A stretch of DNA of 64,000 nt from Trichoplax adhaerens (GCF_000150275.1 NW_002060943.1:1890987-1954986), one strand, 5' to 3'. Positions 29,685-61,406 are shown, counted from the first letter of the stretch. Translations and numbers: made by a program. Notes: generated by a model not told the origin, from the sequence alone.

Positions 29685-31499
29685 ATGGACACTATTTCGT
29701 TGAATGAAGAAGATTGTCCAAGTAGTAGTAGTATTAGCCACGGATACAGCCTAGAATCCATTGAACTGAGAGACAATCTTGAATATGATGCTGATGATCA
29801 CGAGTGCCTCCTGAAATTTACCTCCCGATTTATCAATCGCCATATCCAATATGAGCTTAATGCTAAAGCTTTTCAATATTACTTGGATAAAGTAGACGAT
29901 TCGCCTGGGCCTACAACGTATTATTATCTAGCACGTTGCTATCTCTTTGGTTACGGTATAGAGAGAAATCTTGAAGACGCTTATGAATTTATGGTATCAG
30001 CAGCTCAACTGCGCCATCCGGATGCATTACGCGATTTAAGCTTATTATTTAGCTGCCCATCGACTCTCCATCATACTCAAACTTTCAGAACCTATACAGT
30101 CAGCGATTACAATTATAAACGACTCAAAATTACATCATTATTAATGTCGGCATCGCTAGGCAGTTATAATCAATCACTTCAAGATCTTTCCAATTTATCG
30201 CAATTCATTTTTTGGCAAGATATGATTTGCCATTTAGATTGTATTTATACCAATTTAATCGATCGTTATTTCGATGGAGATGAACGCCACTTAGTTGATC
30301 TTCAACAAATTGCCATGCGTAACTCTAAATTGTTACAAACTCACTCAAACTCCGATGATATGATTGATCGTATCTACAGGGACACTGTATTAACAACAGA
30401 AAATGAGCTCTTTCAAGACGCTAAAAATTTCTCTGAAGAAATTATCGCTGACATCTGCAATCAATTAGGCATCTTGCGCTATATTAAAAGCCTTCAACCG
30501 ACGGAAATTCATCACAAGGGAGAATTATTAGCAGATGCATTAAAGTATTTTCAATGTGCAGCTAAATTAAATTGTGCTGCGGCTTACTTTAACATTGCAA
30601 TTTATTATGATGAATTTATTCACTATCGTCACAATATGACTGTAACAAAACTGCAAGTAATGATGGAAGCTTCCGCTCGTGGCCATGCACTTGCACAATA
30701 TGAACTTGGCTACCATTATCTTAATTCTATGTCCGAACAAGAGCAGGTTCAAGGTTGGCTATACTTGATGCTATCATCAAAATTGGGCTATTCTGACAAT
30801 TTATACCTAGTTGGCATGAGCTATTTGAGAGACGATTGCCGTATATTTGATAAGAAAAATGTATACCTGGCAAAAACTATGTTTAAATTGGCTATTTTTA
30901 GTCTTGAAATTCCTAGTGCAAAGTATTCTAAAAGGGAATGTTTTCAACTTGGATTTGCATATCATCACAGCTTATACTTAGACGACGTACATGATAGTCT
31001 ATTATACTTTGATCGATATAGACTTGCTGCTCATTTTTACGCTTATGCTATTAAAAATCACCTCAATTTTTACTTGCCGTGTTGCTATTTAGCCAAGTTA
31101 ATAGAAAAGCGCCGCATCTATCCGTATGCTATTGAATATATTATAGAATTATATAATCTGGCCATCTGTGACGATGATATCGCTGTCAAAGGATATGCAT
31201 GTTATCGTTTAGGTAAAACTTATTCCAATCAATCCAGTGGTACCTATTATAATCCGTCAAAGGCTAACGAGCACTTTGCCAATGCACTCTGTCATTTTAA
31301 AAAGGTTAAAGATTCAATTAGCGGCCAATACCATTATGCTAATATGCTTCTGCAAGGGCTCGGCGTTGTGAGAGACAGAAGCAAAGCTATCGAAATTTTA
31401 AGTACTATTTGTAACCGTATGCGACATTTTGGCGATCCCTATAAATCCTATCTACAATCTAAAGCAGAGCGCAGATTAAGTCAATTAATTAAACACTAA
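29685..31499 (+). CDS. Sel1-like repeat protein SLR-1 (single module, 604 aa, single-exon)
   Basis: SLR-type units YYLARCYLFGYGIERNLEDAYEFMVSAA, AQYELGYHY, YHYANMLLQGLGVVRDRSKAIE. Family motifs LAKLIEK and YRLGKTYS. Confidence 0.88.
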   Translation: MDTISLNEEDCPSSSSISHGYSLESIELRDNLEYDADDHECLLKFTSRFINRHIQYELNAKAFQYYLDKVDDSPGPTTYYYLARCYLFGYGIERNLEDAYEFMVSAAQLRHPDALRDLSLLFSCPSTLHHTQTFRTYTVSDYNYKRLKITSLLMSASLGSYNQSLQDLSNLSQFIFWQDMICHLDCIYTNLIDRYFDGDERHLVDLQQIAMRNSKLLQTHSNSDDMIDRIYRDTVLTTENELFQDAKNFSEEIIADICNQLGILRYIKSLQPTEIHHKGELLADALKYFQCAAKLNCAAAYFNIAIYYDEFIHYRHNMTVTKLQVMMEASARGHALAQYELGYHYLNSMSEQEQVQGWLYLMLSSKLGYSDNLYLVGMSYLRDDCRIFDKKNVYLAKTMFKLAIFSLEIPSAKYSKRECFQLGFAYHHSLYLDDVHDSLLYFDRYRLAAHFYAYAIKNHLNFYLPCCYLAKLIEKRRIYPYAIEYIIELYNLAICDDDIAVKGYACYRLGKTYSNQSSGTYYNPSKANEHFANALCHFKKVKDSISGQYHYANMLLQGLGVVRDRSKAIEILSTICNRMRHFGDPYKSYLQSKAERRLSQLIKH

Positions 31500-32740
31500 T
31501 AAACAATTATCTTCTTGAATTTATTTCTTTCTGTAAAGTCCTACAAATGAATTGGCTCTTCATGAACAGAACTATTGCTCTGATCATAAATAATAAATCA
31601 GCAGTAGGGTAATTAAAAATCGAGCCAATAGAATAAATAATGGTTATATTGTACATAGGACGATATCAGCCTTATCACAACTTATCCAGAGGATATACTT
31701 GATCATTTGTTACTCTTACAAAGTGTATAGCAAGAATTTCATTAATCATGCTTACATAAATTTAATTTTTCTATCTTCTTTGCATTTAAATTTAAATATG
31801 ATAATTTAGACAATATAGCAGAATTTTCATCTATACTGTAGCGCGGTTTTGTTGCATAAAAATACAATATACTACCAAGATATATAATCATTGCCGCATT
31901 TCTAGCATTCTTAATCCTTTACAAGCGAAGTAGCATTACTGAAATATGGCAATCTGAATTAATAATTATGAGCATCGGCGTCTTAAGAAGCATATTATAT
32001 ATTTATTCTTTTTCATACAATGACTAATGTTGCGTGACTACCGCAAGCATGTTTTTGGCCGCCCACTTTTAATGTTACATTTAAATAGAATAATAATAAG
32101 AAGAAGAGTTTGTTCAGTTTTCATAATTGATAATGTCAGTTATCTGACAGCGTATATTTTGTGTAATTAGCATACAGTATAGCAGAAAGAACAGAGCAGT
32201 AATTAGTGACCATATAAGACCATTGTCTTGAAAGCAATTGTGGATTTGCTATCTTTACTTACAACATAATATAGTACAATTCAATTTCTCTGAGAGAAAA
32301 GTGATCGATTTTAAAATTTGTCTTTGTCCTTATTATACCACGCTAATAATGACAATAAATTAATTTTCTGGTTATTGCAAGCGATTTTGTAGTTGTGTTA
32401 TTAGTTTAAGTTAGAATAGAATACCCCAAATCTGAAATCGGATTAGACAACAAATTGACAGTACTTAAAAATAGGCCGATAGCTTTAGTAGTTGTACACA
32501 GATACGCTCAAGAAGTATCCAGTAGATAGCAAAAATTTTCATATTGTAAGACATGCATTGCTGGTCTATAATCATCCATTATTGCCAACTTTAAAATTTA
32601 TTATTTCATGATGATGGTAGTAAGAAATCATTTTTCACTTAAATCAAGCTTAATTCATTTTGATACTTGCTATAATTGACTGAAATTTAATAAAGGAATC
32701 AACTATTACAAAATCTAAATAAGTTATACAATATAATGAA

Positions 32741-35700
32741 TCATTGGCGCTGCATAGAATCTTTTAGCATATCCAGCTTATTTTGACATTTCTTCAGGTA
32801 ATGCTTAATAAAATAAACGTTGTTCTTACATTTACATCGTAATCCACACGAATAAAACTGTTTTGCCTTATTTAAATCTTTCCTTCGACCGCAACCAAAT
32901 TGACACATTACACCCAAATAATAATTGGACATACATGAAGTTGATGAATAATGTGAATGATTACGATAAAATAACTGAAATGCGCTGTTATAATGTTCGT
33001 TTGCCATATTTTGGCTATTGATATTTGAGTACTGTTCGCATCGACTATAAATTTTTCCTAATAAATAATGTGCGTAGGCTGAATAACAGTTATCCTGAAT
33101 GTAGATAGCTGATTGACATAGCTTTATCGCATCATCTAATTTATTTTTTGCTTTAATGTGATCATGGATGATTAATTTAGCTAAATAGCATCGACTTTTT
33201 GCATCCTCCATTTGATAAAAGGCATCAATAGCATAATAATGAGCAGCTAATTCGTAATGATTACTAGATGACCAATAATATTGATAGATCAAGCCTAATT
33301 CAGCAATGGGTAAATCCACTCTGTAACATCCTAATAGTTTATCCGATATGGATTGATGCAATAGTTGACGAGCCAGTTCGACATTTTTTGGACCTTGATA
33401 TTTTAATGTTATTGCTAAATCAGCCATTGCATCAGGGAAACCAAAATTGGCTGCATTGGTGACACAGCTTGCTTTCTTTTCATCGTCCTTAGTATTTTCG
33501 TCACTACGATCGCATTTACTATTATTGGTGTTGCAGTGGATAAAGAACATTCGATTAGCTCCAGGGTGATTTAATTCAGCAGCTTTGTGATATAAATTGA
33601 TATATTTCATTTTATTGTCAGCCAATTTTAGTTTAAGTTTAGTAAATGCATATAAAAATGTTCCTGCTGGATTTCCCAATTTCATTGATTCTTCAAGATG
33701 TTTCAATATTTCCTTGACAGCTTTCTGATCAGGCATTTTATAATTTAATTCTTTAACCATTAGTAAAATACCCATTTCTGCATGATATTTACTAGATGTC
33801 GTATTACTTAACCTTTTATTGATAAAGCCTAATATTTTTTTATTAAAGCATTTAGTTAAATCTTTGATCCTTTCATCGATGATATCGCGCCAGCATGAAT
33901 AAGCTTTCAAACGATCTTGCATAATATCAATAGCACGAATTGATCCATTTAACGCTGCTGTTACCAAATTTTGTAATTGTACTGTTGCCAATTCTCTAGC
34001 AGTAGTAAATACTTGATAATAGAGTTGTGGACAGTCGCCGTCTTCTTCACAACCATATAAAAATGATAAATTAATACTTGCCATAGGACAATATAATTCA
34101 GCAGCTTGACTATAATATTCGGCTGATAATTTGAAATCTTTAACAGCGCCACCAAGACCATATTGATGCAACAAACCTAACTTATAATATGTAGCAGCAT
34201 TGGGTTTATCTTGCAATTGGCTTTTAGCACATTGGAAATCGAATCGAAAATGTTCAACTGTTAACTGTTTACTGTAATATCTTTGGCTTATTTGATAAGC
34301 TTCCATCATTAATTGAATAGGTGAGTATCCCCATAATGTTTTAATTTCTTTATTTAACCAGTTCAGTTGATCATATAATTTAGCATTATCAGCATCTGCT
34401 GCAACTAGAATTTTACCTCGTAGCCAAGCTTTTATAGAGTAAAATCGATTTAAATAATTGTCAGTAAAATGAGCTCGAGTAATATAGAAATTGCGCTGAG
34501 GTGCTAACACAGGAATATGGCTACTTGTATTAGTGCATGATCCATCTTCCATCAATTTAGAGACAACATAGCGATCCATAGCCGCTGGTTTAACTAATAA
34601 AGCTTCTTCATTAAAGCAACTGAATGCAATATCCATATGCAAATGAACAGATACAGGCTGATAAAATGATAAATGTTGATATTGTTGCTGGCCAATAATT
34701 CTACCAAGCCTGTAATGACAATATGGAGCAACTTGTGTTGCATGTGAGTAAGCGCCATACTGATATAATTGGACAGCATCATTAATATTGCACTGAGATA
34801 ATTTACCTTTTTCGATTAATTTAGCTAAACGACATAAAGCCAAGCTAATATCATGATGTGGATAAATCGAGGAAGCGTAAAAATGTGCCGCTGTAGTAAT
34901 ATTGGCTTGAACCCCAATACCAAATTCATACATTAGGCCAAGGTAAAAATATTCTGTTCGATCAACTGGACCAGCCATACTTGGAGGATTGACAATAGCT
35001 TGAAAAAAGTAATCTTTACCTTGATCAATATCAATATAAAATGGTTGGCCAGCATTAAAGTGCATAGAACCAAGTTGATTATAGACATCTGAATAGGGTA
35101 ATGCTTTTATATAATTTTCTACGTAATATCGATGTTTTAAGATATTCCGTACTTCATTTCGACTTTCTCTCATACTTGCTTTCAATTTTATAGCAGCTAA
35201 TGGACAGCCACGCAAAACAGCTCGATGGTAATGTTTAATTTGATCTAATTCTTGTAAACTAACTTCATTGCCATGACATAATGGAGTATCCAGCTCAGTA
35301 TAAAATGCATAATTCATATCACCACGTGGATCCCCTAGTTGGCTTGCTTTCTTGAAATAATCGAATGATTTGGCAGGTACGCGAATGTCTTCATCACTAG
35401 CTTGATCACGAAGTTGATCTAATGTATTGCACTTATGGATCAAGTATTCAAGGAAGCCCAAACAGTTATACGAATCAATCAATATAATTGTATTCTGCTT
35501 TAATTGCTTAATAGTTTCGTAATTTTGCTCTCTAAATTGATTGATTTCTTGGCGCCAATCTTGACTTGATCGATACAACGATCTTAATGCTTGAATAGCA
35601 TCAGAATGGAGCCCAAAAGCTGCCGCTTTAATTAAATTATTAGCGTGTTTCTTAGCTAATTGTTGTTGATCGAGATGCTGATCATCAGATTGAATTATTT

Positions 35701-36082
35701 TGTCCCTATCTAATTGAAATAAGCCGTAATAAGCTAAAAGATGATTTCGTTGGGCAGCCTGATTATAATGGTATTCACTTTGTTTTTTATCGATTCCAAT
35801 GGAAGAATAACCATGATGAAAGTAGTAACCGAGTAAATAATGGCTATGGGAATCATCGCCATGCTGTAATTTAACATGACAATCTCTCATAGCCTGGTCG
35901 TATATTTCAGTTGTTAGATGTTTTTGAATGCATTTAGTTGCAATTTTGTTGATTTTATCTCCAAATTGTTGAAAAGTAAAATCCCATTGCGTTGATACTT
36001 GCCGTTGAATTAGCAAAGCAGGATCAGGTGCAACCTCGTCATCATCAAAAGATGATGATGATGATGAATAATTCATCATCAA
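32741..36082 (-). CDS. Sel1-like repeat protein SLR-2 (two modules, 1113 aa, single-exon)
   Basis: 3.3-kb ORF. FYLGLMYEFGIGVQANITTAAHFYA, YKLGLLHQYGLGGAVKDFKLSAEYY, YYLGVMCQFGCGRRKDLNKAKQFY. LAKLI and Y(R/L)LG motifs each occur twice. Confidence 0.9.
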   Translation of the reverse strand: MMMNYSSSSSSFDDDEVAPDPALLIQRQVSTQWDFTFQQFGDKINKIATKCIQKHLTTEIYDQAMRDCHVKLQHGDDSHSHYLLGYYFHHGYSSIGIDKKQSEYHYNQAAQRNHLLAYYGLFQLDRDKIIQSDDQHLDQQQLAKKHANNLIKAAAFGLHSDAIQALRSLYRSSQDWRQEINQFREQNYETIKQLKQNTIILIDSYNCLGFLEYLIHKCNTLDQLRDQASDEDIRVPAKSFDYFKKASQLGDPRGDMNYAFYTELDTPLCHGNEVSLQELDQIKHYHRAVLRGCPLAAIKLKASMRESRNEVRNILKHRYYVENYIKALPYSDVYNQLGSMHFNAGQPFYIDIDQGKDYFFQAIVNPPSMAGPVDRTEYFYLGLMYEFGIGVQANITTAAHFYASSIYPHHDISLALCRLAKLIEKGKLSQCNINDAVQLYQYGAYSHATQVAPYCHYRLGRIIGQQQYQHLSFYQPVSVHLHMDIAFSCFNEEALLVKPAAMDRYVVSKLMEDGSCTNTSSHIPVLAPQRNFYITRAHFTDNYLNRFYSIKAWLRGKILVAADADNAKLYDQLNWLNKEIKTLWGYSPIQLMMEAYQISQRYYSKQLTVEHFRFDFQCAKSQLQDKPNAATYYKLGLLHQYGLGGAVKDFKLSAEYYSQAAELYCPMASINLSFLYGCEEDGDCPQLYYQVFTTARELATVQLQNLVTAALNGSIRAIDIMQDRLKAYSCWRDIIDERIKDLTKCFNKKILGFINKRLSNTTSSKYHAEMGILLMVKELNYKMPDQKAVKEILKHLEESMKLGNPAGTFLYAFTKLKLKLADNKMKYINLYHKAAELNHPGANRMFFIHCNTNNSKCDRSDENTKDDEKKASCVTNAANFGFPDAMADLAITLKYQGPKNVELARQLLHQSISDKLLGCYRVDLPIAELGLIYQYYWSSSNHYELAAHYYAIDAFYQMEDAKSRCYLAKLIIHDHIKAKNKLDDAIKLCQSAIYIQDNCYSAYAHYLLGKIYSRCEQYSNINSQNMANEHYNSAFQLFYRNHSHYSSTSCMSNYYLGVMCQFGCGRRKDLNKAKQFYSCGLRCKCKNNVYFIKHYLKKCQNKLDMLKDSMQRQ

Positions 36083-39000: not shown

Positions 39001-39273
39001 ATTTGTTTACTGTTAACCAATCTAGAATCATATAACGGTGTGCGATTATGGGTACTTTATTGCATACATGAGACGACATCATCAGTAATGCTGAGTTCCT
39101 AAGAGATATATCTTTACTATTCAATGGATTATAAATTTATATAATTTTATGCAGGTTATCGCTACTTCAACATGATCAATACAAATGTTTAGCAGTTTTC
39201 ATAACTTGATATCACAATTGAAATAAGAAAATGAAATATTGTAGCATATCTGCTTATCTTAATTTAAATAGAA

Positions 39274-42200
39274 TTACATAGACTGCTGGAGGGCTTTTGC
39301 AGCCTTATTTCGATATCGTAATCTTACGAAATCGTAATCAGCTTTGGACATGTCTATCGTTTTCTGATAGAATAGCATAGCCTTACTAGAATTAGGATTT
39401 GTACCATAGCCACATTTGTACATTTTGGCTAAAATATAACAATCGCGACTAGCATTTTTACTGGATATTAACACATTATATTGAAATTGTCGATAAGCCA
39501 TCCGAAAGTGCGACTTTGCTCGATCAAGATCGTAAAATTTATTATTCTGTTTATTGGAATAAATTTTACCTAATCGGTAATGAGCAACTCCGACATGTTG
39601 ATCATTGATATAAATTGCCGATTGATATAGTTTAATCGCATCTAAAATACTTGCTGCTGGAATCTTCTTCTTCTCGATCAACTGGCCTAATAGAATACGC
39701 CCTTGGCAATCGTTTAACTGGTGTACAATTTGAGTTGAATACCAATGCCTTGCTTTAATATATTTATTGGTACAAGTACTTTCACATTCATATATAATTC
39801 CAAGAAGATAATCTGGTAAAATAGTTGGGATAACTTGATGATGATCTTCTACCATAGCTCTTTCAAGTGTTGAGATAGCCTTATCTAAATTGATTTCAAT
39901 ACCAAATCGTCCGTCAATCCGCCCTAATGCTATCACTAAAGTCGATAATGCATCACCATACTTACTACCATCAATTAGCAATTGGCGTACTTTACGATCG
40001 TCCATGGTTAATTTTTCACCTGCGAATATTAGTTGAACTAACTGCAATTTAGCGGCAATATAATCCAATTTGGCTGCTTTCATAAGATAAGCTTGGGCAT
40101 CATTCTTTTTATTTGAGCCTTTAAAATATTTTTTGTCCAATTTTAATTTAAGATAGCCAAGATAATAATAAGCTGCTGGATCATGTAATTTTGCTGCTTT
40201 ATTGAAGTGATTGATAATTTCATAAACAGATAATGAGTTTGGTTGATCGAAAATAGCTTCTCGAATCATGAGTAATATCCCTAATTCGACCTGCAATTTT
40301 GTCAATTCATCATGACTTAATTTTCTACTTTTACCGTGGCGATAGCTCTTTTCTCGTGTCTTAATACTGGCATCAATTAACTTACTCCAAGCTGGTTTAT
40401 CTCGAACTTGTTGATCGATATAATGCAAAGAATTGATGTTACCCATATAAGCGGATTGTAATAATAAGTCCAGACGATATTCTGCACATTGCTTAGTGCT
40501 AGAATACACTTGGCAGTAATTTGTAGGATCATCACCTTCTTCTTCGCATCCAATCAACAATGCAAGCCCATGATAGGCTAATGAATGACCTAATGCAACA
40601 GCTTTATAGTAATGATTCATAGCTATAGCAGGATCTTTCTTGACAGAGCCTAAACCATTGCGAAAGTAATAACCTAGCTGATAATGGGCATTCATATCAT
40701 CAGATTCTTGCAATTTCTGACGATATTTACGGTAGGAATAATCATATAGTTTAGTCATAAAATCACTAGAAAGGTAGCGTAATGCAATGCGGTATGATGA
40801 CCACATAATCTCTTTTGGTTTACTTCTCCATAAATTTTGAATTTCATCATTCATTGATGTAATATTCTGGATAATTTCTTGCCGTTGTGTAGGTTTCATC
40901 CCTTCGTATTTTAATTTAGCTTTAATAGCATAGTATCGATAATCTAATGATCTATTATAATATTCGCTTGCTGCATAATAACAGGCAGTTGGATTTGTTT
41001 CATTTTCTTGATTTGTATCTATTGAATAAATATTGCCTTTTATGTAATAACTTATTGGGCATGGTGAAACAGCTTGAAGTAGTTTATTGGCCATCTGGTA
41101 GTAAAAGCTAGCTTTAGTTGTATCAAATCCCATTTCTTGACTAATTAATCCTTTGCTACACATCCTACCCAATCGATAGCAAGCATATGCCGATGCTAGC
41201 GGTTCTAATTTTAGGCAAGCACTTTGATAGAGTCTAACTGAATCAAGGAGTGTTGATCGAGGTACAGTTTCTTTTTCAATTAATTTAGCTAATAGGACCA
41301 TAGTTATAGGGCATTTACTCGATTTTAATAAGGTAGCTGCATAATAATGAGCAGCTTGTACTTTATCAATCCCAGTACCGACACCTAGTTGGTAAAGATA
41401 GCCTAAATAGCAATTATGTCGAGTATCTGTGGGATAAAGACAACTAGGATTGGCTGTTAATGCTCTCTCTAAATATTCCCGAGCCAATTGATGATCGTAT
41501 TGCCATCCTTGGCGTGGCTCTAAGTAGGTATAAGCCAATTCTCTCAAGATATCAGAGAATCCGCCAGCTTTAGCAGCTTTTATCAATAGCCCTTGTGATA
41601 TTCGATTACTATCAACGTTATCTGGACGTTGTAAATTTAAAGCTAAATGCAGACTAAACCAGCCTAGTGGGTGATCTTTGATAGCTGATTGTATGAAACA
41701 ACTCATAGGGTAAAGATTTGCTTCCTTTGTGTTAATAGAACTGGAATCGGTTAAAAATTGTGGCGATAACATTTTCCTGAAGGCATAATTAAAATAGCCC
41801 TGGCCATCACCTAATTTAGCTGCTTTTTGAAAGCAGTCGTAAGCATAACGTGTTGTTTTGTCAACAGAGGTAATTTTATCAGTGGTCAAGTTATCCTCAT
41901 CGATGTTTTCTTCATCAGAATTATCATCGTCAGTTTGACTAGCATGAATGAAACATTCAATAACACCAAGGTAATTATATAATTCTGCTATAGTCGATGT
42001 GTCAGTAGTTTCATCAATAGCAGTTTCGATATCATCCTTAATTTCTAGCAGTTTATTTCTCCAAAACGGATGACTGTTATATTTACTTCTCAACATTTTT
42101 CCAGCATAATAATGTTGACCGTTAACAACTGCATCCATTAATAATCTCACTTTAATGTCAATGAGTTGTTTTTCATCTATTTTTTGTATTGATGACGATT

Positions 42201-42600
42201 CTTGGTGATCTATATTTGAATCGCAATCATACAAAGTTGACATGTCGTGACAAGCTAAATGATGGTGTCGCTTAATGGCTTCTTCGTAATACCGTAGCGC
42301 CTCAACACTGTCTTTCTTATCTATTCCAAGCCCATGTTGATGGTAATATCCAATTTGGTAATAAGCATGGCAATGATCATTGTCTTTGATTTGTTGCATA
42401 TAAGTCTGATAAGCTGTTCTATACAATTTATTCATTAATTCTTCATTACGATGTATTTTTAAAATCCTACTGACATCGTTATTTAATTGTTTAGATTGAC
42501 AATTCCATATTGAAAATAATTCAGTTCTTAGCCAATTCATGATAGAATTAACTTGTAATTCATCTTGTGGATGAAATAATGTAGTAATACTTGTGTTCAT
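39274..42600 (-). CDS. Sel1-like repeat protein SLR-3 (two modules, 1108 aa, single-exon)
   Basis: 3.3-kb ORF. YQIGYYHQHGLGIDKKDSVEALRYY, YLGYLYQLGVGTGIDKVQAAHYYA, YQLGYYFRNGLGSVKKDPAIAMNHY, YILAKMYKCGYGTNPNSSKAMLFY. Confidence 0.9.
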   Translation of the reverse strand: MNTSITTLFHPQDELQVNSIMNWLRTELFSIWNCQSKQLNNDVSRILKIHRNEELMNKLYRTAYQTYMQQIKDNDHCHAYYQIGYYHQHGLGIDKKDSVEALRYYEEAIKRHHHLACHDMSTLYDCDSNIDHQESSSIQKIDEKQLIDIKVRLLMDAVVNGQHYYAGKMLRSKYNSHPFWRNKLLEIKDDIETAIDETTDTSTIAELYNYLGVIECFIHASQTDDDNSDEENIDEDNLTTDKITSVDKTTRYAYDCFQKAAKLGDGQGYFNYAFRKMLSPQFLTDSSSINTKEANLYPMSCFIQSAIKDHPLGWFSLHLALNLQRPDNVDSNRISQGLLIKAAKAGGFSDILRELAYTYLEPRQGWQYDHQLAREYLERALTANPSCLYPTDTRHNCYLGYLYQLGVGTGIDKVQAAHYYAATLLKSSKCPITMVLLAKLIEKETVPRSTLLDSVRLYQSACLKLEPLASAYACYRLGRMCSKGLISQEMGFDTTKASFYYQMANKLLQAVSPCPISYYIKGNIYSIDTNQENETNPTACYYAASEYYNRSLDYRYYAIKAKLKYEGMKPTQRQEIIQNITSMNDEIQNLWRSKPKEIMWSSYRIALRYLSSDFMTKLYDYSYRKYRQKLQESDDMNAHYQLGYYFRNGLGSVKKDPAIAMNHYYKAVALGHSLAYHGLALLIGCEEEGDDPTNYCQVYSSTKQCAEYRLDLLLQSAYMGNINSLHYIDQQVRDKPAWSKLIDASIKTREKSYRHGKSRKLSHDELTKLQVELGILLMIREAIFDQPNSLSVYEIINHFNKAAKLHDPAAYYYLGYLKLKLDKKYFKGSNKKNDAQAYLMKAAKLDYIAAKLQLVQLIFAGEKLTMDDRKVRQLLIDGSKYGDALSTLVIALGRIDGRFGIEINLDKAISTLERAMVEDHHQVIPTILPDYLLGIIYECESTCTNKYIKARHWYSTQIVHQLNDCQGRILLGQLIEKKKIPAASILDAIKLYQSAIYINDQHVGVAHYRLGKIYSNKQNNKFYDLDRAKSHFRMAYRQFQYNVLISSKNASRDCYILAKMYKCGYGTNPNSSKAMLFYQKTIDMSKADYDFVRLRYRNKAAKALQQSM

Positions 42601-43684: not shown

Positions 43685-43708
43685 CCTAATCCTAACCCTA
43701 ACCCTAAA
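43685..43708. repeat. Short interstitial telomere-like tract, ~4 units of (CCCTAA)n
   Basis: CCTAATCCTAACCCTAACCCTAAA; the reverse complement approximates (TTAGGG)4. Confidence 0.45.
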
Positions 43709-46700: not shown

Positions 46701-46779
46701 TAGCAAGTTTAGGCTTCGAAAGTATAAATAGCACATCAGAGGGATTATTTCAAGTAACTGTAACTGTCCCCTAGAGTTC

Positions 46780-48240: not shown

Positions 48241-50244
48241 CCATTTCCATAGCTCTTCTATTATTGTATTCAAGCATCATTTTAACAGCGATAAACAATA
48301 TTCCAATATCAATTAAATATAAATGAGAGGATCTGTAAATCTCCTGATATCAGATTAACAGCCTATTTCTTGGCTACGTTATTAAATCCTATTAGCTCAT
48401 TATTCTAATCAATTGTACTACAATCATTATTCCAATTGCTATTCTAATCCAATTAACAATACGTTGCATTGATCCAAAGTTAGTTTCCTTATTTCCTATT
48501 GGAACATGGTGTCAAAGAAAATTCTATTATCCAAATAAAGTTCAATTATGACTCAATTTAAAATGCCAACGGAGTAAGACTAGAAGTCAAGGCCAATTTG
48601 CTGTAAATGATCACGCCAGTAGAAGGATGGTTAGATATCCTTTATACGGATAAATATAATAATCGATTGGCCATTTTTAGTATACGTCACATGCTGCGCC
48701 AAGCACTTATTATATCAACACAAACCAGTCAATTAATTTTGTACAACAGACACCAGCCTAAATTAGGAATTATTAAGAAATTACTCTACTGTTGAGCCGT
48801 AAAATCTGACGATAGCAATGGTTAGTCTTGATCGATCACTGTGGTCAAGCGATAATTGATGTTTTTAGGTTATTTTTTTGTCTCCATGTTGAACTCGTAT
48901 TGAGATCGATGATTTGTCTTCACGTCGATGCGATTGCTAAATTATTTCTACCTTGATTGTTAGAATCGTTGTTGAACATTTTTCAACTTCCATCACCACG
49001 ATTATATAGCTATTTTCCGATCGTTTTTTTCGACTAAACCAAGTCTACATTCACGGTGAGAACTAAACTATTGATATATAATATAAAGTACTATCAAACT
49101 ACCAATGGTTATCCAGAACTAGATCAAGCTGTTTTATTCTTTTACAATTTACTCTTACATCATTTCAATACAGTGATAATCTATTAGTAAGAAATAAGTT
49201 AAATATATTGAATATTTCACTTCCGTCTTGCTTCTAATTGGGTAATTTGTACTAAACAATGTCGACGTTAGAAGATTACTTGACTAAGTGTTAATATTCA
49301 TTGCCAATGGATATTCAATAGTAATGGAATAGTTCTTTTTTATTCTGAACTACGCGTCTATATCGCTTGGCGACGTTGACTCTGTTGTTGACAAAGTCAT
49401 AGAGAGAAGTCCATGCCATGTTATTTTACATAACTAGCTCACTATTTTATATAAATTTTATACACGTTCTTCGAGTTGCAATAAGATTGACATTGTATTG
49501 CACCATTCGCCTGTGATAACTGGAATACTGTAGGATAGACGAGAAGGACAGCTTGGTATATCTCTCATTGTTGGCTAGCGCGATTGCATACACGTGTTAA
49601 CCGGCAACTATGTAGTCCACTATTTGCAGATATAATTGCTACACTATTGCATCGTATCAAATACTTTGAAGAAACACGATGCAATTCAGAATTCTATCTT
49701 AATATTGAGTGATAACTTGACTTGCTATATGCGAAAACAGTCGTAGTAGATTAGAGTAGGTGCTATTAAAATTGTCAGCGAACATTAATATTGCACGAGC
49801 TAGCTATTATCCTTGGAATAAGTCATTTTTATCCTGTTAATATATCAATCATAATAAAATAACAGTATGATCGTTACGAATGGCTTCGTTATTATTGATC
49901 ATTTCTGCAAACTTCTCTTCAATCATTAATTAATTCTTGACCTATGATAAGATAATGAAAATAATTACTCTAGTTTTTTCTTTTGTTCATATTAATGTCT
50001 AATCTTCTACTCCCTTCTTTTGTTCCTTTGACTCTAATATTCAATTTAATTTCTACATCTATAGCCTTGTAGACGCAATTGGTAATACAACCTATAGAGA
50101 AACCAAGTAAAAAAAGTAACCTTACAATAAATTCAATAAGAAACGATTATACTTTTAAGATTAAATTACATCGAATTGAATATTCATTGGTTGTATCATT
50201 TGAACTTGATTAGAAAGCATCATTAAGTAGTTCATCGAGCAAAG

Positions 50245-53200
50245 ATGGATTTAGACGATCAATGGTTGGTTAGCCAATATGAATGTTTTGAAAAGGAAAT
50301 TGCCGATTTATGGCAGCTATCACAGGACGAATTAAAAGATCATATTCTTAAAATTGCTCAAAGTTATCTTCGTCCAGAAATATCCAACGCTTTGTACGCG
50401 AAAGCAATTAAAAATTGCCAACAACGCATTGAAATTGCTGCTAGTACCAACCAACCTAATCCTCATGCTCATTTCCAACTGGGTTATTATTATCAATTGG
50501 GTTGTGGTAATTTGAAAATCGATTTAAACAAAGCAAAGTATCACTATGAACAAGCAATACTCCATGATCATTACGCTGCTATGTACCAGATTTGCTCTTT
50601 GTATGGTGAATTGGAACATGAAGAAAATGGCCATCATGATACAAACCCAACTACGCAACAACAGTATGTCGAAATGATCGATCGTAACAAATTAATATCC
50701 ATGAAACTTAAAATGTATATCAGAGCTGCCGCCTACGGCTTACATGAGAAAGCAATACGAGATTTACGCCATTATTATCTACAATATCGCGAATGGATAA
50801 GAGCTATTGATCAATTAAAAGCAGAATATGAAGAACAAATTGAAACTGCAATAGATAAAAATATCAATATCGCTGAAGTATATAATAATCTCGGTTTTCT
50901 GGAATGCTTTCTCGAATGGTGTCAAGTAGTAGAAGGCGATGAAGGCGATGAACCTCTTGTTGATTTTCCACAGCAAGCTTACGATTATTTTTTAAAAGCA
51001 GGCGAACTTGGACTAGCCAGTGGCTATATGAATTTTGCATTTTATCGAGGTTACGATGCTAACTGTGTCGATCAAGAAACCAATGGCATTAAAAATAATT
51101 TTATGATTATGGCTAAGTATTACCTTAAAGCTGCACAAAATGGTTGTGCTATTTCTTGGCAAAAATTATACGATGTTTTGAAAACTGAATTTAAATCTTG
51201 TGTTCCTAAACGAAATCTATTGAAGTATGTTCTAAATGCTCTCAAACACTATCGATTTAGTGATATGTTATTGGCTATGGCTAACAATTTCATGACACAA
51301 AATAGCATAGAAATGGCATCTTTCTCACACGCTATTCAATACCTAGAAGAAGCAGTTGTCTCTTGTCATAGCTACTCTACTGATGATCTTAGGAATGAAT
51401 TTTTATACCTTGGTTTCATGTACGAACAAGGTCTAGGCGTTGAACGAGATACTATCAAAGCTGCTCATTTTTATGCTTGGTCAATTACGACACAATGTGA
51501 ATGTACATTAGCTGTATGCCGATTAGCCAAATTGATCGAGAAAAATCATCTTCCTCCTCCCCATGATATTACACATGCAATTAAATTGTACGAATCGACC
51601 ATGCTTCTTATTAAACAAGATGTTACTTCCTATGCTCAATATCGACTTGGTAACTTATTTCATAGTGGTCGATATGAAAATCTCGGTATACTACCTGATA
51701 TGGCTGAATATCACTACGATGGAACCTCAAATGCTATGATTTCCCTGATATTATCTGGTAAAGCTACTGCAGCTCATATTTATCATTTAGCTAAGATGCA
51801 CGCTGTCGGTTGTATGGTTGATCCTGCTATTGAAAAAGCAATCGATTTATACAGTAATGCTCTAGCATATTATAAAAATGCTGATTACCACGATCGCTTC
51901 CATGCCATCAAGGCTAAACTACAGCTGCAAAAAATTAAAAATAGACACCAACTTAATTATAAGGAGCGAAATAATCAACTTCATATCAAAGAAATCAATA
52001 GTAATGGCCAATTTTCATCGTCGGAACTATTTATGAATCCATTAGACCAGGCTTATTATGATAAAGAAGCAGATCAATTGCAAAACAAATTTGTAAATGC
52101 ACCTTCATCATCCAAATTATCCATCAATTCTATTGATAAATCGTACTATTCAGAACAAATCAACTTGTTACACAGTGAATTAGATAGTCTTCAACTACCC
52201 TCACCGTCGAAATTATTGATGAATTGTATAAATATTGCCGAACAGTATCTATCACAAAATGTAGAATTAAGCTACCGTCAACCAATCTACAATAAAATTA
52301 TGGCCGAATTAAATGACCAACCTACAGCGAGCACTTTCTATCACATTGGTAATTTATACTTTCGTGGTCAAGGATTTCAACAATTTGATCTACCATTAGC
52401 TATGGAATATTTAAAGAAAGCCGCTGATATGAATCATCCATTAGCAAAATTAGACATGCTATACCTATATGGATGCCAAGAGAAAGGTGATGATCCATCT
52501 TTATCCTATAAAATTACAGATACTGCCGAAGAATTGGCTAAAATAGAGTTAACCGTCATCCTCGATACAGCTTATCAAGGTGATCGAAGGGCACTAACCT
52601 ATCTTCAAAAGCGATTAGAATTATTCCACGCCTGGAACATCGCTGTTGATAATCTGATTAAGCATCATAAGAATGAATTAGCCTCGCAAGTGAAAAATTT
52701 AAAATCAACCGATCTTGCAAGACTATGCCTGGAATTAGGATTTTTAATTATGGCTAAAAATTTAGAAAAAGATCAACTCAATGAAAAGATAATTACTGAA
52801 ATAGAGACCTATTTTCAAAAGGCTGAAAATTTGGATAATAGCAGAGTTGACTTCTTTATGGGTTTGTTATGTGAATTTACTGCTTATTCTCATCCAAATG
52901 CACAAAATGATGAACATTGTGCAATTAAGTATTATGAGCGAGCTTTAAAAGCTGGCAATAATCATTTATCTCCCACTATTGCTACTTATTACTTGCATGG
53001 CCAATGCAATAACGACCATCTGCTTAACCAAAGCGCTCTTGATCTGCTACAACAGTCACATCATAATGGCTTTGCAGATGCTACCAGCCAATTATCTATG
53101 ATTTACCTTGATGGAAGATGCGATACACAACAAGATTTCCAACGTTTTACTCAATTAGCAGAAATAGCTCTTGCGACAACATATTGCAGTGATATCGATA

Positions 53201-53778
53201 ATACATTTCTATATTATCATTTAGCATTTTACTATTATCATTATTCGCATGTAAATAATCGATATGAGCGTGCTGCTCATTTTTGTGCGCTGGATATGAG
53301 TCAGCAACTGGACGATGGAAGAACTCGATGTTTGATGGCGAAGATGCTTGAAAAGCGACGTCTATCATCGAGTAGTTTAACGGATGCGATCAAAATGTAT
53401 TTATCTGCATTGTATCTGGACGATAACCTTACTGGCTATATACACTATCGACTGGGTAAGCTGCGATCGAATCTATCTGAAATTGATGTCTATGATCTAA
53501 AGTTGGCTCAGCAACACTTTCATCAAGCTCAACATTACATGAGAACGACCAAGACAAGCAATATTGTGACCAAATGCCGGGATATGTACCATCTCGGTTT
53601 GATGTTTGAACATGGCTTTGGTGTTGCTCAATGTATTGAAAAGGCTAAAGAATGGTATAAAAGATGCTATCAGTTGAAGAACAATTGCCATACCATTTTT
53701 GGCTGTCATCAGATTAAGTATTATATCACAAAATCAAAGAAAAGATTGAATATTTTAGAGGCTGATATAGAAGACTGA
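50245..53778 (+). CDS. Sel1-like repeat protein SLR-4 (two modules, 1177 aa, single-exon)
   Basis: 3.5-kb ORF. FQLGYYYQLGCGNLKIDLNKAKYHY, LYLGFMYEQGLGVERDTIKAAHFYA, YHIGNLYFRGQGFQQFDLPLAMEYL, YHLGLMFEHGFGVAQCIEKAKEWY. Confidence 0.92.
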   Translation: MDLDDQWLVSQYECFEKEIADLWQLSQDELKDHILKIAQSYLRPEISNALYAKAIKNCQQRIEIAASTNQPNPHAHFQLGYYYQLGCGNLKIDLNKAKYHYEQAILHDHYAAMYQICSLYGELEHEENGHHDTNPTTQQQYVEMIDRNKLISMKLKMYIRAAAYGLHEKAIRDLRHYYLQYREWIRAIDQLKAEYEEQIETAIDKNINIAEVYNNLGFLECFLEWCQVVEGDEGDEPLVDFPQQAYDYFLKAGELGLASGYMNFAFYRGYDANCVDQETNGIKNNFMIMAKYYLKAAQNGCAISWQKLYDVLKTEFKSCVPKRNLLKYVLNALKHYRFSDMLLAMANNFMTQNSIEMASFSHAIQYLEEAVVSCHSYSTDDLRNEFLYLGFMYEQGLGVERDTIKAAHFYAWSITTQCECTLAVCRLAKLIEKNHLPPPHDITHAIKLYESTMLLIKQDVTSYAQYRLGNLFHSGRYENLGILPDMAEYHYDGTSNAMISLILSGKATAAHIYHLAKMHAVGCMVDPAIEKAIDLYSNALAYYKNADYHDRFHAIKAKLQLQKIKNRHQLNYKERNNQLHIKEINSNGQFSSSELFMNPLDQAYYDKEADQLQNKFVNAPSSSKLSINSIDKSYYSEQINLLHSELDSLQLPSPSKLLMNCINIAEQYLSQNVELSYRQPIYNKIMAELNDQPTASTFYHIGNLYFRGQGFQQFDLPLAMEYLKKAADMNHPLAKLDMLYLYGCQEKGDDPSLSYKITDTAEELAKIELTVILDTAYQGDRRALTYLQKRLELFHAWNIAVDNLIKHHKNELASQVKNLKSTDLARLCLELGFLIMAKNLEKDQLNEKIITEIETYFQKAENLDNSRVDFFMGLLCEFTAYSHPNAQNDEHCAIKYYERALKAGNNHLSPTIATYYLHGQCNNDHLLNQSALDLLQQSHHNGFADATSQLSMIYLDGRCDTQQDFQRFTQLAEIALATTYCSDIDNTFLYYHLAFYYYHYSHVNNRYERAAHFCALDMSQQLDDGRTRCLMAKMLEKRRLSSSSLTDAIKMYLSALYLDDNLTGYIHYRLGKLRSNLSEIDVYDLKLAQQHFHQAQHYMRTTKTSNIVTKCRDMYHLGLMFEHGFGVAQCIEKAKEWYKRCYQLKNNCHTIFGCHQIKYYITKSKKRLNILEADIED

Positions 53779-55430: not shown

Positions 55431-55660
55431 TTTTAGCAGGTAAAAAGCGGTAGGCAAAAGCTCGCTTAGCTGGCTGCGATCCTCTTCCCAATTCAAGTAG
55501 AAAGCGCCATCAACAAGAAGTAAAATCTTCTCTTATGTGATCTTAGCCATCAAAAACAAATTGAAAACTTGAGGTATCATTCCACGATCATTATCAAGAG
55601 GATCTAATTACCAATTCGATGCTAGTATCGAAGGGTCGATTCCAATTCAAGTAAAGAAAG

Positions 55661-58294
55661 ATGCAACAAGATCAGAGCAATTACGATGATGACGCTCTTA
55701 GCGATATCAATTGGCTAACAAATTTACAACCTACCCATCTGCATAAGAATCGCAGTGATCGTTATGGCCTTGGCCAGTGTAGTAAAATGGATAACACTAT
55801 CAACCAACCTCATCATTATTATACGCATCGATCACAACCGTCGACTTCGCGTTGCGGTATTAGTGAACCACCGCCCGAAGAAGTTATTGTTATGAATAGG
55901 AAATATGTCAAACCGCCTTATTCTTATGCTAAATTGATCACCATGGCCATCGACAGTACAACCGATAAGAAAATGCTCTTGAAGGATATATACGAATGGG
56001 TCGAAACGAAATATCCATTTTATAAGTACACTTCAAATAAAGGATGGAAGGTTAGTTTAGAGTGGATATCAATGGAAATGATGCATAGTCAAATCAGTCA
56101 GGTGCAGTGAGATGGATGACCAATACAGTAGATTCTATCTCTGCTTTCCAAAGACTGCGCCTAGAGCATTTTAAATTCATTTCTACAGCATAACCATGGA
56201 CAACATCATACACCGTACTTGTAATCGACAGTCATATAATGGCAAATTTTCATGTAACACACTATCTGAACTAGATCCCACTATTTCGACACACCTTCAT
56301 AAGACCACTAGTAAGAGTGGCTTATGAGGCCTTAACATAACCATAAAGCCTTAACAGTCAATACGGTACCAATCATGCTGTACATTTCCAACCTTGTATT
56401 ATTTATCATGTGTAATTTTATTCCATCATTTTCTAGTATACAAACACATCTATTGAAGCAGTATAAGTAAAGATGCACTTGTACAACATGAAAAATTCAT
56501 TATTTCAGTAATGTTACAGACTGTAGCCATCTATTTCTTAGTAAGAAATCTTGCTAAGCCATAACACCATCCAATTCATCGACTTCGCTGAATACAGTAG
56601 AATAGGATGGTAGATGAAGTCACAATTTTACTTGTTGAAATTTTTAACGATAGTCATGAGTAATTACTAGACACAAATACAATTAGGTCATGTACAATCT
56701 TTAACTTAATGCTATAATATTTGATTGTGCTATAGTGTATTCTCTAAAACCCATTCAATATTAATATGGTAAATTCAATTCCATCCGGTCAATAAAAGTA
56801 ATATCTTGTATCGTTAGGAATGATGTTTTTCAATAGTTATCTTAATATGTGCTCTATGCCTTTAGCTAAATATACAGTATAACGTTCTTACCAATCTTCT
56901 TATTATTGTTCATATTTCAATAATAGAACTCCATACGTCATAATTTATCCTTGAAGCCTTACTTTATTAAGTTGGATCGTAGTGGCCGCGTTTGCAATTC
57001 GTCAGAAAGTAAAGGTTGCTATTGGATGCTCGCACCATCGATGCAAAAAGAAAACATCCCTCCTGGTCAGCACATTATAACTACTGCTAATAAATTAACA
57101 AACATTTACACACAACCAAAAAATAACCTGATTCCTACTGGCTTGCCGAATAAATCTGGTAAAAATATACCGACGGCATTAATTGCTACCCCTTTATATG
57201 CTGTATCAGACGGTAGCAATGATGATCATAATAATAAGCGTGTTATCCCTATCTTACCCAAGGGTCTTCCAACATTTTACGTCTTAGCTTCTGTACCAAC
57301 GTCCACTTCTGTTAACAGCGAAGCCACATCATCTGAACCAATTACAACTATAGCTAGTACATCGCAAGTAAAAGACCTCCACTATGTAGTAGATAATCCC
57401 TCATTATTAGCTAACTCTCAATGTACTGCATCAGCGCCTCAAGCTAATTTATCAAGCAACAACTACTACATTAACGATAATTTCCCCAATTCTAGCGTTA
57501 CAGCTAGTTTAGGAACTTGCACACAAAATAACTCAGACGATATCAAGGCTTGGAATGATGATTTAAATGTGCCTTTCAGTAGAAAAAGACCAGGCCAAGA
57601 GATTTCGTCTGTAAATAAGAAACAATGTGATAGCGGTATCATGGAAGATTCTACAACTACATTAGATGTCGAGAAATATGAAACTCCCAAGAAGAAAGAC
57701 AGAGCTTCTACCACTATCGATGAATCGACCTATAAAACTCCTATTAGAGCATTACAAGATGTATTTCCAGAAAACATTGTTTCATCACCGTTGGATACTT
57801 TGTCAACACCCAACGTTAATGCGCTATTAAAAACTGTTAGTAGTAGTTGTAGGAAAAGTTTAGATAAGTTTGAATCATCATCATTTTGGAGTGAAATGGA
57901 AGCTGTAGCAGGTATGGCCACGTTATTCACTACTCCTGTACGTTCTAGTAGCAAGAGAAATAACGATCACGAAACTACGCCTTTAGTAAGGCAGCAACCT
58001 ACTTTAGCTGCTTTAAATGACAAATCCAAAATAACTCCAACCAAAAATCAAGATAATCGGATTAACTTTGATGATTTAAGTTTAACCCCTTATCTGAAGA
58101 CGATATTAAATACTAGTACATCTGATAGTGGAATTTTTAGCTTTTCCTCGCCAACACGTTCTCCTAAGAGTATTCATGAATCTACGTCCTTGTTATCGCC
58201 TGCCGAATTTGTCAAGACCCACGATTTGAAAGAGCTAACTCCTAGAAAGCCAATTCGTAATCGAGGTCGTCGATCATACAATATATCACAATAA
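55661..58294 (+). CDS. foxM: Forkhead transcription factor, FoxM-like (2 exons, 585 aa)
   Basis: Exons 55661-56050 and 56927-58294; a phase-0 GT..AG intron splits [12 protein letters not shown]. Forkhead domain [56 protein letters not shown]...KGCYW. FoxM-like features are LSDINWL, KRVIPILPK and many C-terminal S/T-P sites. Forkhead identity is near certain; the subfamily call is less so. Confidence 0.85.
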
Positions 58295-59741: not shown

Positions 59742-61406
59742 CTACTCTAATAATGTTAGTAGTGACTTTCGTTGTTTAAGTGCTTTTTGTGCGTAATGTT
59801 TATCATAAACAGAACTAGTTATTTCAGCAGTTCCAATCGCTTTTTGATAATTAATCACGGCTGCATCCAAATCTTTTCTGACCCCTAAACCAAATTGATA
59901 TATTCTACCTACATGGTAGTAATCGTCTGAGTCTCGATCAATTTTTTCCTTCCTCTTGGATCGAAATCGATCCAAAGCATACTCATAGTGGATTTTTGAC
60001 AACCGAGAATCGTAATAATTGCAATAACGATCATTTGAATAGATTTTACCCAGGCGGTAATGCGCATAGCCGTTAATATTATTATTATTATCTAATTCAA
60101 TAATTTTCATGTATAACTTGATGGCTGAGGAAATGTTTAAATTTTGTAATTTCTTTTTTTCAATTAACTTTGCTAAAAATAAGTAGCATTGTAAACAATT
60201 GGCCATTAGGATACCAGAGGCGTAGAAATGCGTAGCTTGCTCAATATCTATGGATAGGCCTAAACCTTTATGATATATATAACCTAATTGAAAATATTGA
60301 CGACCTTCGTGTAGATTGTCGAATAGATTAGTAGCAGCAATAGCCCATTCAAAATAATCTTTGGCTAAATTTAAATCTTGAGCAACACCTAATCCATTCA
60401 GATAAGCTAATCCAACATGATATAATATATCAGAATAGCCGTAGCGAGCCGATTTCAATAACAGTTTTAGTGCTTCAGAATAATCACGATTGGTAGTGGG
60501 TGTTTCAGTTTGGTACAGGATTGCTAACTCAAATTGGGCTAAACAATGGCCTTGATCAGCTGCCATGATATAATATTGGATATTTTCACTGTCATGCGTT
60601 GTAGGAGCTGGACGAGGAGAGGATAAACCAGCAAATTTATGAACAGCTAAGTTGTAGCTGGCCGCCGGTTTACCTAGTTGCTTTGATTTTTCAAAATAGT
60701 CATAGCCACGTTGTAATTGGCGATCGCTCTTTTCTTTTTCATGATTGCATTCAGCGGTAATAACATCTAAGATACCAAGTTCATTATAGATATGACTCAA
60801 TTGATTGGTATTCTCAGTTGTATCAACTGATTTTTCTAATGATTGGTAATAATCATCAATGACTGAACGCCAATTTTGTGAATCAGCGTAAGAGTCTTTC
60901 AATTTTCGATAAGATTGTGTGTATTTGCCTTCAGCAGCAGATTTGGTCAGCATTTTCACTTGCTCTTCGATACTTTCTATTAAAGTTAATTGATCAATGT
61001 CTACATCATTATAATTGCCATAGCGATCTTGAACTAATTGAGCTAACTGATAATAAGCACCAGGATGATGATCTTCAATTGCTAAACGATAATTTTCCAT
61101 TGCTTTATGTTCATCCTTTTGAACTGGACCTATACCATAATGATAATAATATCCTAATTGATAATATTTATGCGAGTTATCTTCGACATCATTGCGAATA
61201 CTGCGCGTTAACTGTTCTAGCGAATTCCTATGCAATCTCTCATCAACCCCATCTAATAAATAATTTCGAGCAATTTTGATGGCGTCTTCATCTAAATCGT
61301 CTAATGTATCCTTGAATTTGATTGTATTACTTGACGATGTTCTGGATGATGGCCCACTTCTTCTAGCTTGAATCACGATACGAAATCGTGTAACAGGAAA
61401 ATCCAT
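59742..61406 (-). CDS. Sel1-like repeat protein SLR-5 (single module, 554 aa from first ATG)
   Basis: YQLGYYYHYGIGPVQKDEHKAMENY, AQFELAILY, YHVGLAYLNGLGVAQDLNLAKDYF, FQLGYIYHKGLGLSIDIEQATHFYA, YHVGRIYQFGLGVRKDLDAAVINY. The frame stays open to 61508, next to a possible acceptor, so an upstream exon cannot be excluded. Confidence 0.9.
   Translation of the reverse strand: MDFPVTRFRIVIQARRSGPSSRTSSSNTIKFKDTLDDLDEDAIKIARNYLLDGVDERLHRNSLEQLTRSIRNDVEDNSHKYYQLGYYYHYGIGPVQKDEHKAMENYRLAIEDHHPGAYYQLAQLVQDRYGNYNDVDIDQLTLIESIEEQVKMLTKSAAEGKYTQSYRKLKDSYADSQNWRSVIDDYYQSLEKSVDTTENTNQLSHIYNELGILDVITAECNHEKEKSDRQLQRGYDYFEKSKQLGKPAASYNLAVHKFAGLSSPRPAPTTHDSENIQYYIMAADQGHCLAQFELAILYQTETPTTNRDYSEALKLLLKSARYGYSDILYHVGLAYLNGLGVAQDLNLAKDYFEWAIAATNLFDNLHEGRQYFQLGYIYHKGLGLSIDIEQATHFYASGILMANCLQCYLFLAKLIEKKKLQNLNISSAIKLYMKIIELDNNNNINGYAHYRLGKIYSNDRYCNYYDSRLSKIHYEYALDRFRSKRKEKIDRDSDDYYHVGRIYQFGLGVRKDLDAAVINYQKAIGTAEITSSVYDKHYAQKALKQRKSLLTLLE

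Follow-up and report, generated by a model that had tools for sequence, protein, structure and literature searches.

Intronless Sel1-like-repeat genes of Trichoplax adhaerens: a family of apparently placozoan-restricted, probably cytosolic adaptors

Five long open reading frames (ORFs) of 604, 1112, 1108, 1177 and 554 amino acids (aa), all uninterrupted and all encoding Sel1-like repeats (SLRs), lie within a 64,000-nucleotide stretch of the Trichoplax adhaerens genome (G000:C1414:1890987-1954986; hereafter the window), which is low in G+C (0.28-0.42). The locus raises the question of what kind of proteins these genes encode and how such a group arose. A first-pass annotation had proposed a locally expanded and fast-evolving family of cytosolic sensors or scaffolds, comparable to intracellular immune receptors and founded by a retrocopy or by a horizontally acquired gene. 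The reading that we regard as probable, though far from certain, is that the five genes belong to a cluster of seven within an old family of intronless cytosolic SLR adaptors that seems to be confined to placozoans.

The shared module of the window genes

The five single-exon genes are indeed present in mixed orientation, and all pass the gathering score of the Pfam family Sel1 (PF08238, TPR clan), with 35.6-86.6 bits versus a cut-off of 30.7. Positions are counted from the first nucleotide of the window.

29685-31499, + strand: S1, 604 aa, intronless, single module (Pfam Sel1; 596 bits against the module profile)
32741-36082, - strand (32741-36079 from the first ATG): S2, 1112 aa, double module (N module 34397-36079, C module 32744-34396, both - strand)
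39274-42600, - strand: S3, 1108 aa, double module (N module 40903-42600, C module 39277-40902, both - strand)
50245-53778, + strand: S4, 1177 aa, double module (N module 50245-51924, linker of about 67 residues, C module 52126-53775, both + strand)
59742-61508, - strand (first ATG at 61406): S5, 554 aa, single module

S1 to S4 agree letter for letter with public gene models, including identical models of 604 aa for S1 and 1177 aa for S4; the models of Trichoplax sp. H2 are TrispH2_009884 for S1, TrispH2_009885 for S2 and TrispH2_009887 for S4. S5 is 100% identical to an H2 protein that was automatically named 'Death ligand signal enhancer'. The extent originally given for the cluster (29685-61406) holds for these five genes but is too short, as a profile search of the genome revealed two further members beyond the end of the window (G000:C1414:1955047-1956717 and 1959507-1962806), so that the full cluster comprises seven genes with 11 modules. 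In H2, the locus tags TrispH2_009884-009891 correspond to this cluster.

The five proteins are paralogs with 23-32% identity in an all-against-all BLASTP comparison, which also revealed that S2, S3 and S4 each consist of two tandem copies of a unit of about 550 residues. This unit is a collinear module with 12 repeats that is common to all five genes. The alignment of the eight modules reproduced the ordered motif series that had been noticed beyond the generic SLR consensus, with the same motifs in the same order: YQLGYY..G.G, SAA.G...A...L...Y...W, YN.LG.L, G(Y/F)SD, AAH(F/Y)YA, LAKLIEK, DAIKLY, YAHYRLGKIYS and Y..KA. When two placozoan orthologs were included, 17 columns were invariant. A profile of the module matches family members in one collinear stretch of about 500-550 positions (174-680 bits) and foreign SLR proteins only in many short, repeat-sized stretches; therefore, the similarity among the members exceeds that of generic SLR proteins. 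Within this cluster S1 diverges most, and an insertion of about 45 residues follows its conserved Trp.

Conservation is unevenly distributed along the module. Over the 28 modules of T. adhaerens, conservation peaks in two zones, one at the first canonical repeats (helices 3-5) and one at helices 18-21, the latter containing the most conserved block:

60039-60245, - strand: residues 388-456 of S5, helices 18-21, with AAH(F/Y)YA, LAKLIEK, DAIKLY and YAHYRLGK

The charged residues K413, E416, K417, R451 and K454 (numbering of S5) are kept in at least 80% of these 28 ancient paralog modules. The module opens with two capping helices, after which about 12 Sel1-like helix pairs build up an alpha-solenoid. 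The AlphaFold2 model of S5 is all-helical with 25 helices (mean predicted local distance difference test score, pLDDT, 85.9; predicted template modelling score, pTM, 0.85), and its top Foldseek matches, at a probability of 1.00, are solved SLR proteins, namely those of Oxalobacter, E. coli c5321, Legionella LceB and LpnE, Helicobacter HcpC and SEL1L. For S3, two all-helical solenoids were predicted (mean pLDDT 80.0, pTM 0.51) that are joined by a hinge of low confidence at residues 575-592, and the model leaves their relative placement undefined.

The absence of a signal peptide, a transmembrane segment and a catalytic domain, which had been read from the sequence, was confirmed by a hydropathy scan and by Pfam. 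The highest 19-residue Kyte-Doolittle means of the five proteins are 1.01-1.47, with none of at least 1.6, and none of the N-termini resembles a signal peptide. No Pfam family besides Sel1 exceeds its own cut-off in the five window proteins, and the same is true for eight other members, with the exception of DUF2610 in the protein P0038; in particular, this Pfam comparison yielded no NACHT or NB-ARC NTPase coupled to the repeats. No recognisable domain was found in the C-terminal 500 residues of TRIADDRAFT_60256. The net charge of the first 30 residues is +5 for S5, whereas the N-termini of S1 to S4 are acidic (-2 to -8). The N-terminus of S5 (about 33 residues) is basic, rich in Ser/Thr and predicted to be disordered.

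Family size, duplication history and selection

A search of the complete 105.6-Mb assembly of 1414 contigs with the module profile yielded 38 matches, nearly all of them in stop-free open frames. They represent 24 intact intronless genes with 28 modules, distributed as follows:

C1414, this cluster: 7 genes, 11 modules
C1411: 3 genes
C1401: 4 genes
C1414, at 9.08 Mb: 2 genes
C1409: 2 genes
C1389: 2 genes
C1388, C1412, C1410 and C1411: 1 single gene each
C1409:5655297-5656582: pseudogene fragment with stop codons

A divergent 25th member, located at about C1410:2550.3-2552.1 kb, is module-collinear over 454 columns (hhalign 99.6%, E 7.9e-25). Most Sel1-repeat loci listed by a Sel1 scan of the genome belong to this family. 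Sel1 repeats are also present in a 2213-aa open frame at G000:C1407:1084401-1085420 (- strand), which is not matched by the family profile and represents a different large SLR-containing gene.

The proposal that the family is lineage-specific agrees with all searches beyond the genome, as every full-length relative found among the best protein matches and in the contig scans is placozoan. The module profile was compared with 1.84 billion representative proteins, and among the best 150 matches about 22 are full-length proteins aligned in a single stretch, all of them from T. adhaerens, from Trichoplax sp. H2 or from other placozoan assemblies, the orthologs in the latter being 64-85% identical. 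The remaining matches among these 150 are long or giant SLR arrays aligned in many short stretches, the few named ones being bacterial, and such giant arrays are uninformative on ancestry. Pattern scans with an alignment of 10 module rows detected no bearer of the family signature in 185,579 prokaryote genomes, in metagenome contigs or in viral contigs, only generic SLR relatives (21-31%); many of those from metagenomes lie on contigs labelled as human gut, which are bacterial DNA. With S5 as the query, a word-based protein search returned only placozoan relatives and weak generic bacterial SLR matches, and a look-up in the ESM Atlas only generic bacterial SLR clusters. The family was not encountered in the literature searched, and its members are named 'hypothetical', 'Death ligand signal enhancer' or 'HRD3A' in public records.

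A maximum-likelihood tree of 37 modules, with support from the Shimodaira-Hasegawa-like approximate likelihood ratio test (SH-aLRT), bears out the local expansion, as the window cluster forms a single clade with a support of 100. Likewise, the N modules of the four double-module genes group in one clade (98) and their C modules in another (100). Thus, the double architecture arose once and was then copied: one internal module duplication, followed by gene duplication, gave rise to the four double-module genes. The branches that separate paralogs have a length of about one substitution per site or more, whereas ortholog pairs are only 0.1-0.5 apart, and therefore the duplications are without exception older than the divergence of the placozoan lineages under comparison. 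The deep divergence between the copies reflects age, not speed.

For S1, S2, S5 and the member designated S6, a one-to-one ortholog exists in another placozoan lineage. The S1 ortholog adjoins a partial S2 ortholog tail-to-tail on contig L055, and the S5 ortholog adjoins a Fox exon on contig L033 (which is overlapped by L034), so that the S1/S2 and the S5/Fox gene orders have been kept. Amino acid identities and the approximate ratios of non-synonymous to synonymous substitution rates (dN/dS), calculated pairwise by the Nei-Gojobori method against orthologs in other placozoan assemblies, are as follows:

S1: 65.0% identity, dN/dS 0.175
S2 (part): 64.9% identity, dN/dS 0.125
S5: 79.1% identity, dN/dS 0.079
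S6: 65.7% identity, dN/dS 0.152
Member on C1411: 85.5% identity, dN/dS 0.060

These values (0.06-0.18) indicate purifying selection on the family, and in no window of 60 codons did the ratio of non-synonymous to synonymous proportions of differences (pN/pS) exceed 0.73. For comparison, proteins of Hoilungia and Trichoplax differ by a genome-wide mean distance of 28.3 +/- 12.9%, and 97% of the orthologs have a dN/dS below 0.5 (PMC6067683). The ortholog distances within the family, 21-35%, are within about one standard deviation of that mean, which is an approximate benchmark, as the lineage compared may differ. If the divergence of the compared lineage is of the Hoilungia-Trichoplax order, the family genes would be ordinary in rate.

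The view of a fast-evolving family resembling immune receptors is therefore not upheld: the paralogs are ancient, the orthologs are one-to-one and syntenic, dN/dS is low and no window is elevated. The selection found is largely the uniform purifying selection that the first-pass annotation itself had set against its proposal, and the pairwise estimates, the window scan, the orthologs and the tree revealed no rapid diversification of the NLR/STAND type and no turnover of the repeat array.

Function and origin of the family

The SLR proteins would function as cytosolic protein-protein adaptors, the cytosolic location being favoured because transmembrane segments and signal peptides are absent. 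The charged block in repeats 9-10 (LAKLIEK / YRLGK) may be a family-wide docking site that would bind a common partner or mediate self-association, and the far more variable remainder of the solenoid would provide each paralog with clients of its own. Six members outside the window cluster start with Met-Gly in a context (MGxxx[STA]) that matches the PROSITE N-myristoylation pattern PS00008, G-{EDRKHPFYW}-x(2)-[STAGCN]-{P}; in two more members the Met-Gly start is present but the strict pattern is not matched. The motif is retained in two orthologs. The loci that match the consensus are:

C1411:572939-591683: N-myristoylation consensus
C1401:1283260-1285149: N-myristoylation consensus
C1414:9090891-9092516: N-myristoylation consensus
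C1389:699718-701397: N-myristoylation consensus

Judged from these motifs, the members with the consensus probably work at membranes, to which myristate would tether them, and the window clade, because it is devoid of the myristoylation signal, would be a soluble and partly doubled branch of the family.

Additional clues come from members that are joined to other domains:

G000:C1401:1322668-1324884 (L021:1486-3669), - strand: TRIADDRAFT_60263, a family member with DUF2610 as its first approximately 90 residues
G000:C1410:2549801-2552053 (L147:2302-4554), - strand: the divergent 25th member, an ORF of 564-572 aa, and a Death-domain exon

DUF2610 (PF11020) starts at the first Met of TRIADDRAFT_60263 (103 bits); the genome has no other DUF2610, and the fusion is conserved in a second placozoan (P0038). 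Stand-alone DUF2610 ORFs of about 90 aa were found with the Pfam model in five of 401 sampled genomes of Pseudomonadota, the best of them being 37% identical to the placozoan domain, and their GapR/DUF2312-like and NDUFS4-like neighbours were read by eye as alphaproteobacterial traits. Protein searches with the DUF2610 part returned two placozoan proteins only and no short bacterial relatives. The domain is a candidate for a bacterial-derived piece. The Death-domain exon is located 265 nt downstream of the divergent member (Pfam 25.7 bits versus a cut-off of 22.6); a canonical GT donor lies across the final codons of the SLR frame and a canonical AG acceptor restores the frame, so that splicing is predicted to generate an SLR plus Death-domain protein. 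In addition, one module is linked to a coiled coil in a gene model from H2. The three kinds of fusion suggest that the module acts as a recognition or assembly arm on signalling parts. The proposed sensor or scaffold role thus receives indirect support from the Death-domain exon, and a signalling role via this relative is plausible. In the part of the supplement of the placozoan cell atlas that was covered (PMC10580291), the distant member TriadG56576 belongs to a cell-type co-expression module rich in G-protein-coupled receptors, glutamate receptors and ferlins, and is therefore expressed.

It should be noted that several points weigh against the adaptor reading or qualify the results on which it is built. 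A full-length relative from outside the placozoans, if its score were as weak as about 190 bits or less, could hide outside the best 150 protein matches. The dN/dS values are approximate, as dS is near saturation (pS 0.62-0.68), although the gap between pN and pS is still large. None of the seven genes of the window cluster starts with Met-Gly, and the trait is scattered on the tree with at least five changes, so that its ancestral state is not proven. The join between the SLR and the Death domain was read by eye from the splice consensus. The searched portion of the atlas supplement (PMC10580291) did not include the identifiers of the five window genes, and no RNA-derived contig was found for S5, the contigs with its ortholog being genomic.

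Among the other explanations, the proteins might be intracellular immune sensors, their solenoids diversifying rapidly for the recognition of microbial ligands and their expansion being driven by conflict with microbes, including intracellular bacteria. We consider this improbable. It is true that the family is lineage-specific, large and arranged in tandem clusters, that its divergent member has a splice-compatible Death-domain exon, and that the Death-domain repertoire of Trichoplax is very large, with at least 118 genomic matches. However, the one-to-one orthologs, the low dN/dS without an elevated window and the age of all duplications are opposed to it, and the 24 core genes contain no NTPase, TIR or other signalling domain. 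Copy number may vary, as the H2 member P0060 (540 aa; on L031, the segment 39052-50674 of contig NOWV01000310.1) has no counterpart in the H1 assembly, but its whole region is missing there: surroundings of about 8 kb, including a thrombospondin-repeat gene, have no near-identical H1 region, and the only part with matches in H1 is a dispersed repeat at positions 8000-10400 (many copies, 66-88%). The absence of P0060 could be a real presence/absence difference, and an assembly gap explains it equally well.

The automatic names in H2 and UniProt records imply a different identity, namely that the genes are orthologs or co-orthologs of a known eukaryotic SLR protein, either DELE1 or SEL1L/Hrd3, and the basic, Ser/Thr-rich N-terminus of S5, which is kept in its ortholog, could be a mitochondrial presequence as expected for DELE1. 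Nevertheless, such an identity is scarcely credible. The profile matches DELE1 (8d9x) with no better than 1.6e-10, its best stretch spanning about 85 residues (profile positions 28-112), and SEL1L is matched repeat-wise only; the module length and the signature are common to neither protein, and none of the best 150 matches is a non-placozoan full-length protein. Moreover, the family lacks the signal peptide and the transmembrane segment of SEL1L, and in Trichoplax SEL1L is encoded by a different, multi-exon gene, which bears that name in the atlas table. The names DELE1 and HRD3A are thus largely refuted, with the matches being partial or repeat-wise and the SEL1L gene residing elsewhere.

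The origin of the intronless founder is a separate question. The founder might have been an SLR gene from a bacterium, such as one that encodes an effector in an alphaproteobacterial endosymbiont, and would have been transferred to the stem placozoan, domesticated and amplified; this would be compatible with the adaptor function favoured here. None of the approximately 25 members contains an intron, in a genome otherwise rich in them, stand-alone SLR arrays of such length are typically bacterial, and the top sequence matches in the Protein Data Bank (PDB) are bacterial (Legionella LceB, 7e-30; Oxalobacter, 6e-29), with SEL1L (1e-27) marginally behind. Placozoans host a rickettsial symbiont. 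A SEL1/TPR protein of this placozoan symbiont has been discussed (PMC3641634). One member carries the bacterial-type DUF2610 from its first Met, and this fusion, together with the uniform intronlessness, hints at a transfer or at bacterial input. However, the fusion is confined to one gene and could be a separate, later acquisition, and uniform intronlessness fits a retrocopy of an old eukaryotic SLR gene as well as it fits horizontal transfer. In addition, none of the bacterial genomes and metagenome contigs scanned bears the signature (the best tblastn matches, at 21-31%, cover part of a module), the G+C content of 0.31-0.35 matches that of the surrounding host DNA, eukaryotic traits are seen in the N-myristoylation signals and in the spliced extensions with a Death domain or a coiled coil, and repeat proteins are not reliably placed in cross-kingdom trees. 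We regard a bacterial founder as rather unlikely. A still bolder proposal combines this origin with function: an SLR gene from an intracellular alphaproteobacterium would have been domesticated in the stem placozoan, grown to about 25 genes and become wired into death-fold signalling through the Death-domain fusion and into membrane signalling through the N-myristoylated members, with DUF2610 as a relic of the donor and the window cluster, including its double-module genes, as the soluble branch. We hold little confidence in this combination, and prefer the placozoan adaptor family as described above.

Neighbouring genes and comparison with known systems

The neighbours of the cluster were expected to contain introns, and this is borne out by the P450 and Forkhead domains, which are split over separate ORFs:

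308-12496, + strand: three tandem cytochrome P450 genes, the P450 profile of each being split over ORFs, which indicates introns
55661-58294, + strand: Forkhead gene between S4 and S5, the Forkhead domain cut by an intron and the last exon long and Ser/Thr-rich (447-aa ORF)
16805-17386 and 25226-25849, both - strand: two intronless ORFs of the Ras GTPase superfamily (193 and 207 aa; Pfam Ras 1e-52 and 8e-50), immediately upstream of the SLR genes
28558-28927: tandem repeat of 112 bp, 3.3 copies with 82% matches, about 750 bp upstream of S1
42601-50244: 7.6 kb between the divergent genes S3 and S4, with no ORF of at least 120 aa

A link to small GTPases was considered, as Ras-family genes occur within 20 kb of four of about 13 family loci, versus about 0.3 expected from their density. 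It was set aside, since the 20-kb threshold had been chosen post hoc and the GTPases are of mixed kinds. Across the gap between S3 and S4, the H2 locus tags are consecutive, so that apparently no gene is annotated there; the gap may be a shared regulatory region.

As a key outgroup, placozoans bear on the origin of animal cell signalling and symbiosis, and roughly one in five of their genes lacks a match in other animals (PMC6067683). The present analysis unites about 25 scattered records named 'hypothetical', 'DELE1' or 'HRD3A' into one family defined by its module, its signature and its history of duplication, and corrects misleading automatic names. No new mechanism is revealed and the idea of immune receptors is weakened, but the family offers experimental handles: the charged block as a candidate docking site, the myristoylation-consensus versus the soluble branches, and the Death-domain and DUF2610 fusions. 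Trichoplax has also become accessible to transgenesis (PMC13276646).

Several known systems can be compared with the family. The likeness to the Death-domain, Roco and NLR-like families of placozoans consists in the divergent SLR member that is apparently spliced to a Death domain, whereas the 24 core SLR genes, including the five of the window, have no Death, NTPase or Roc domain. SEL1L/Hrd3, the adaptor of endoplasmic-reticulum-associated degradation, contains an SLR solenoid of comparable length (PDB profile E 1e-27, Foldseek E 6e-10); however, it is a lumenal membrane protein of the endoplasmic reticulum with a signal peptide, a transmembrane anchor and many exons, and the placozoan family is without such segments. 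DELE1, which relays mitochondrial stress to the kinase HRI, is likewise an animal, non-secreted SLR/TPR protein, and it oligomerises and docks a partner. It has about seven repeats following a long presequence, compared with about 12 in the placozoan module; the N-termini of S1 to S4, being acidic, show no sign of mitochondrial targeting, and the similarity is weak and partial (1.6e-10 over a best stretch of about 85 residues).

The bacterial stand-alone SLR proteins (LpnE, LceB, c5321/EsiB, HcpC and the Oxalobacter protein) contain the same class of repeat, form an alpha-solenoid and lack further domains. As a rule they are secreted or periplasmic, often with a signal peptide or disulfide Cys pairs, whereas the placozoan proteins have neither, and the identity of about 15-25% is repeat-wise and not collinear. 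The signature with LAKLIEK, YAHYRLGKIYS and AAHFYA belongs to the placozoan family and is absent from the 185,579 prokaryote genomes. Nevertheless, these bacterial proteins are the best matches in both sequence and fold, and their known role is protein-protein interaction.

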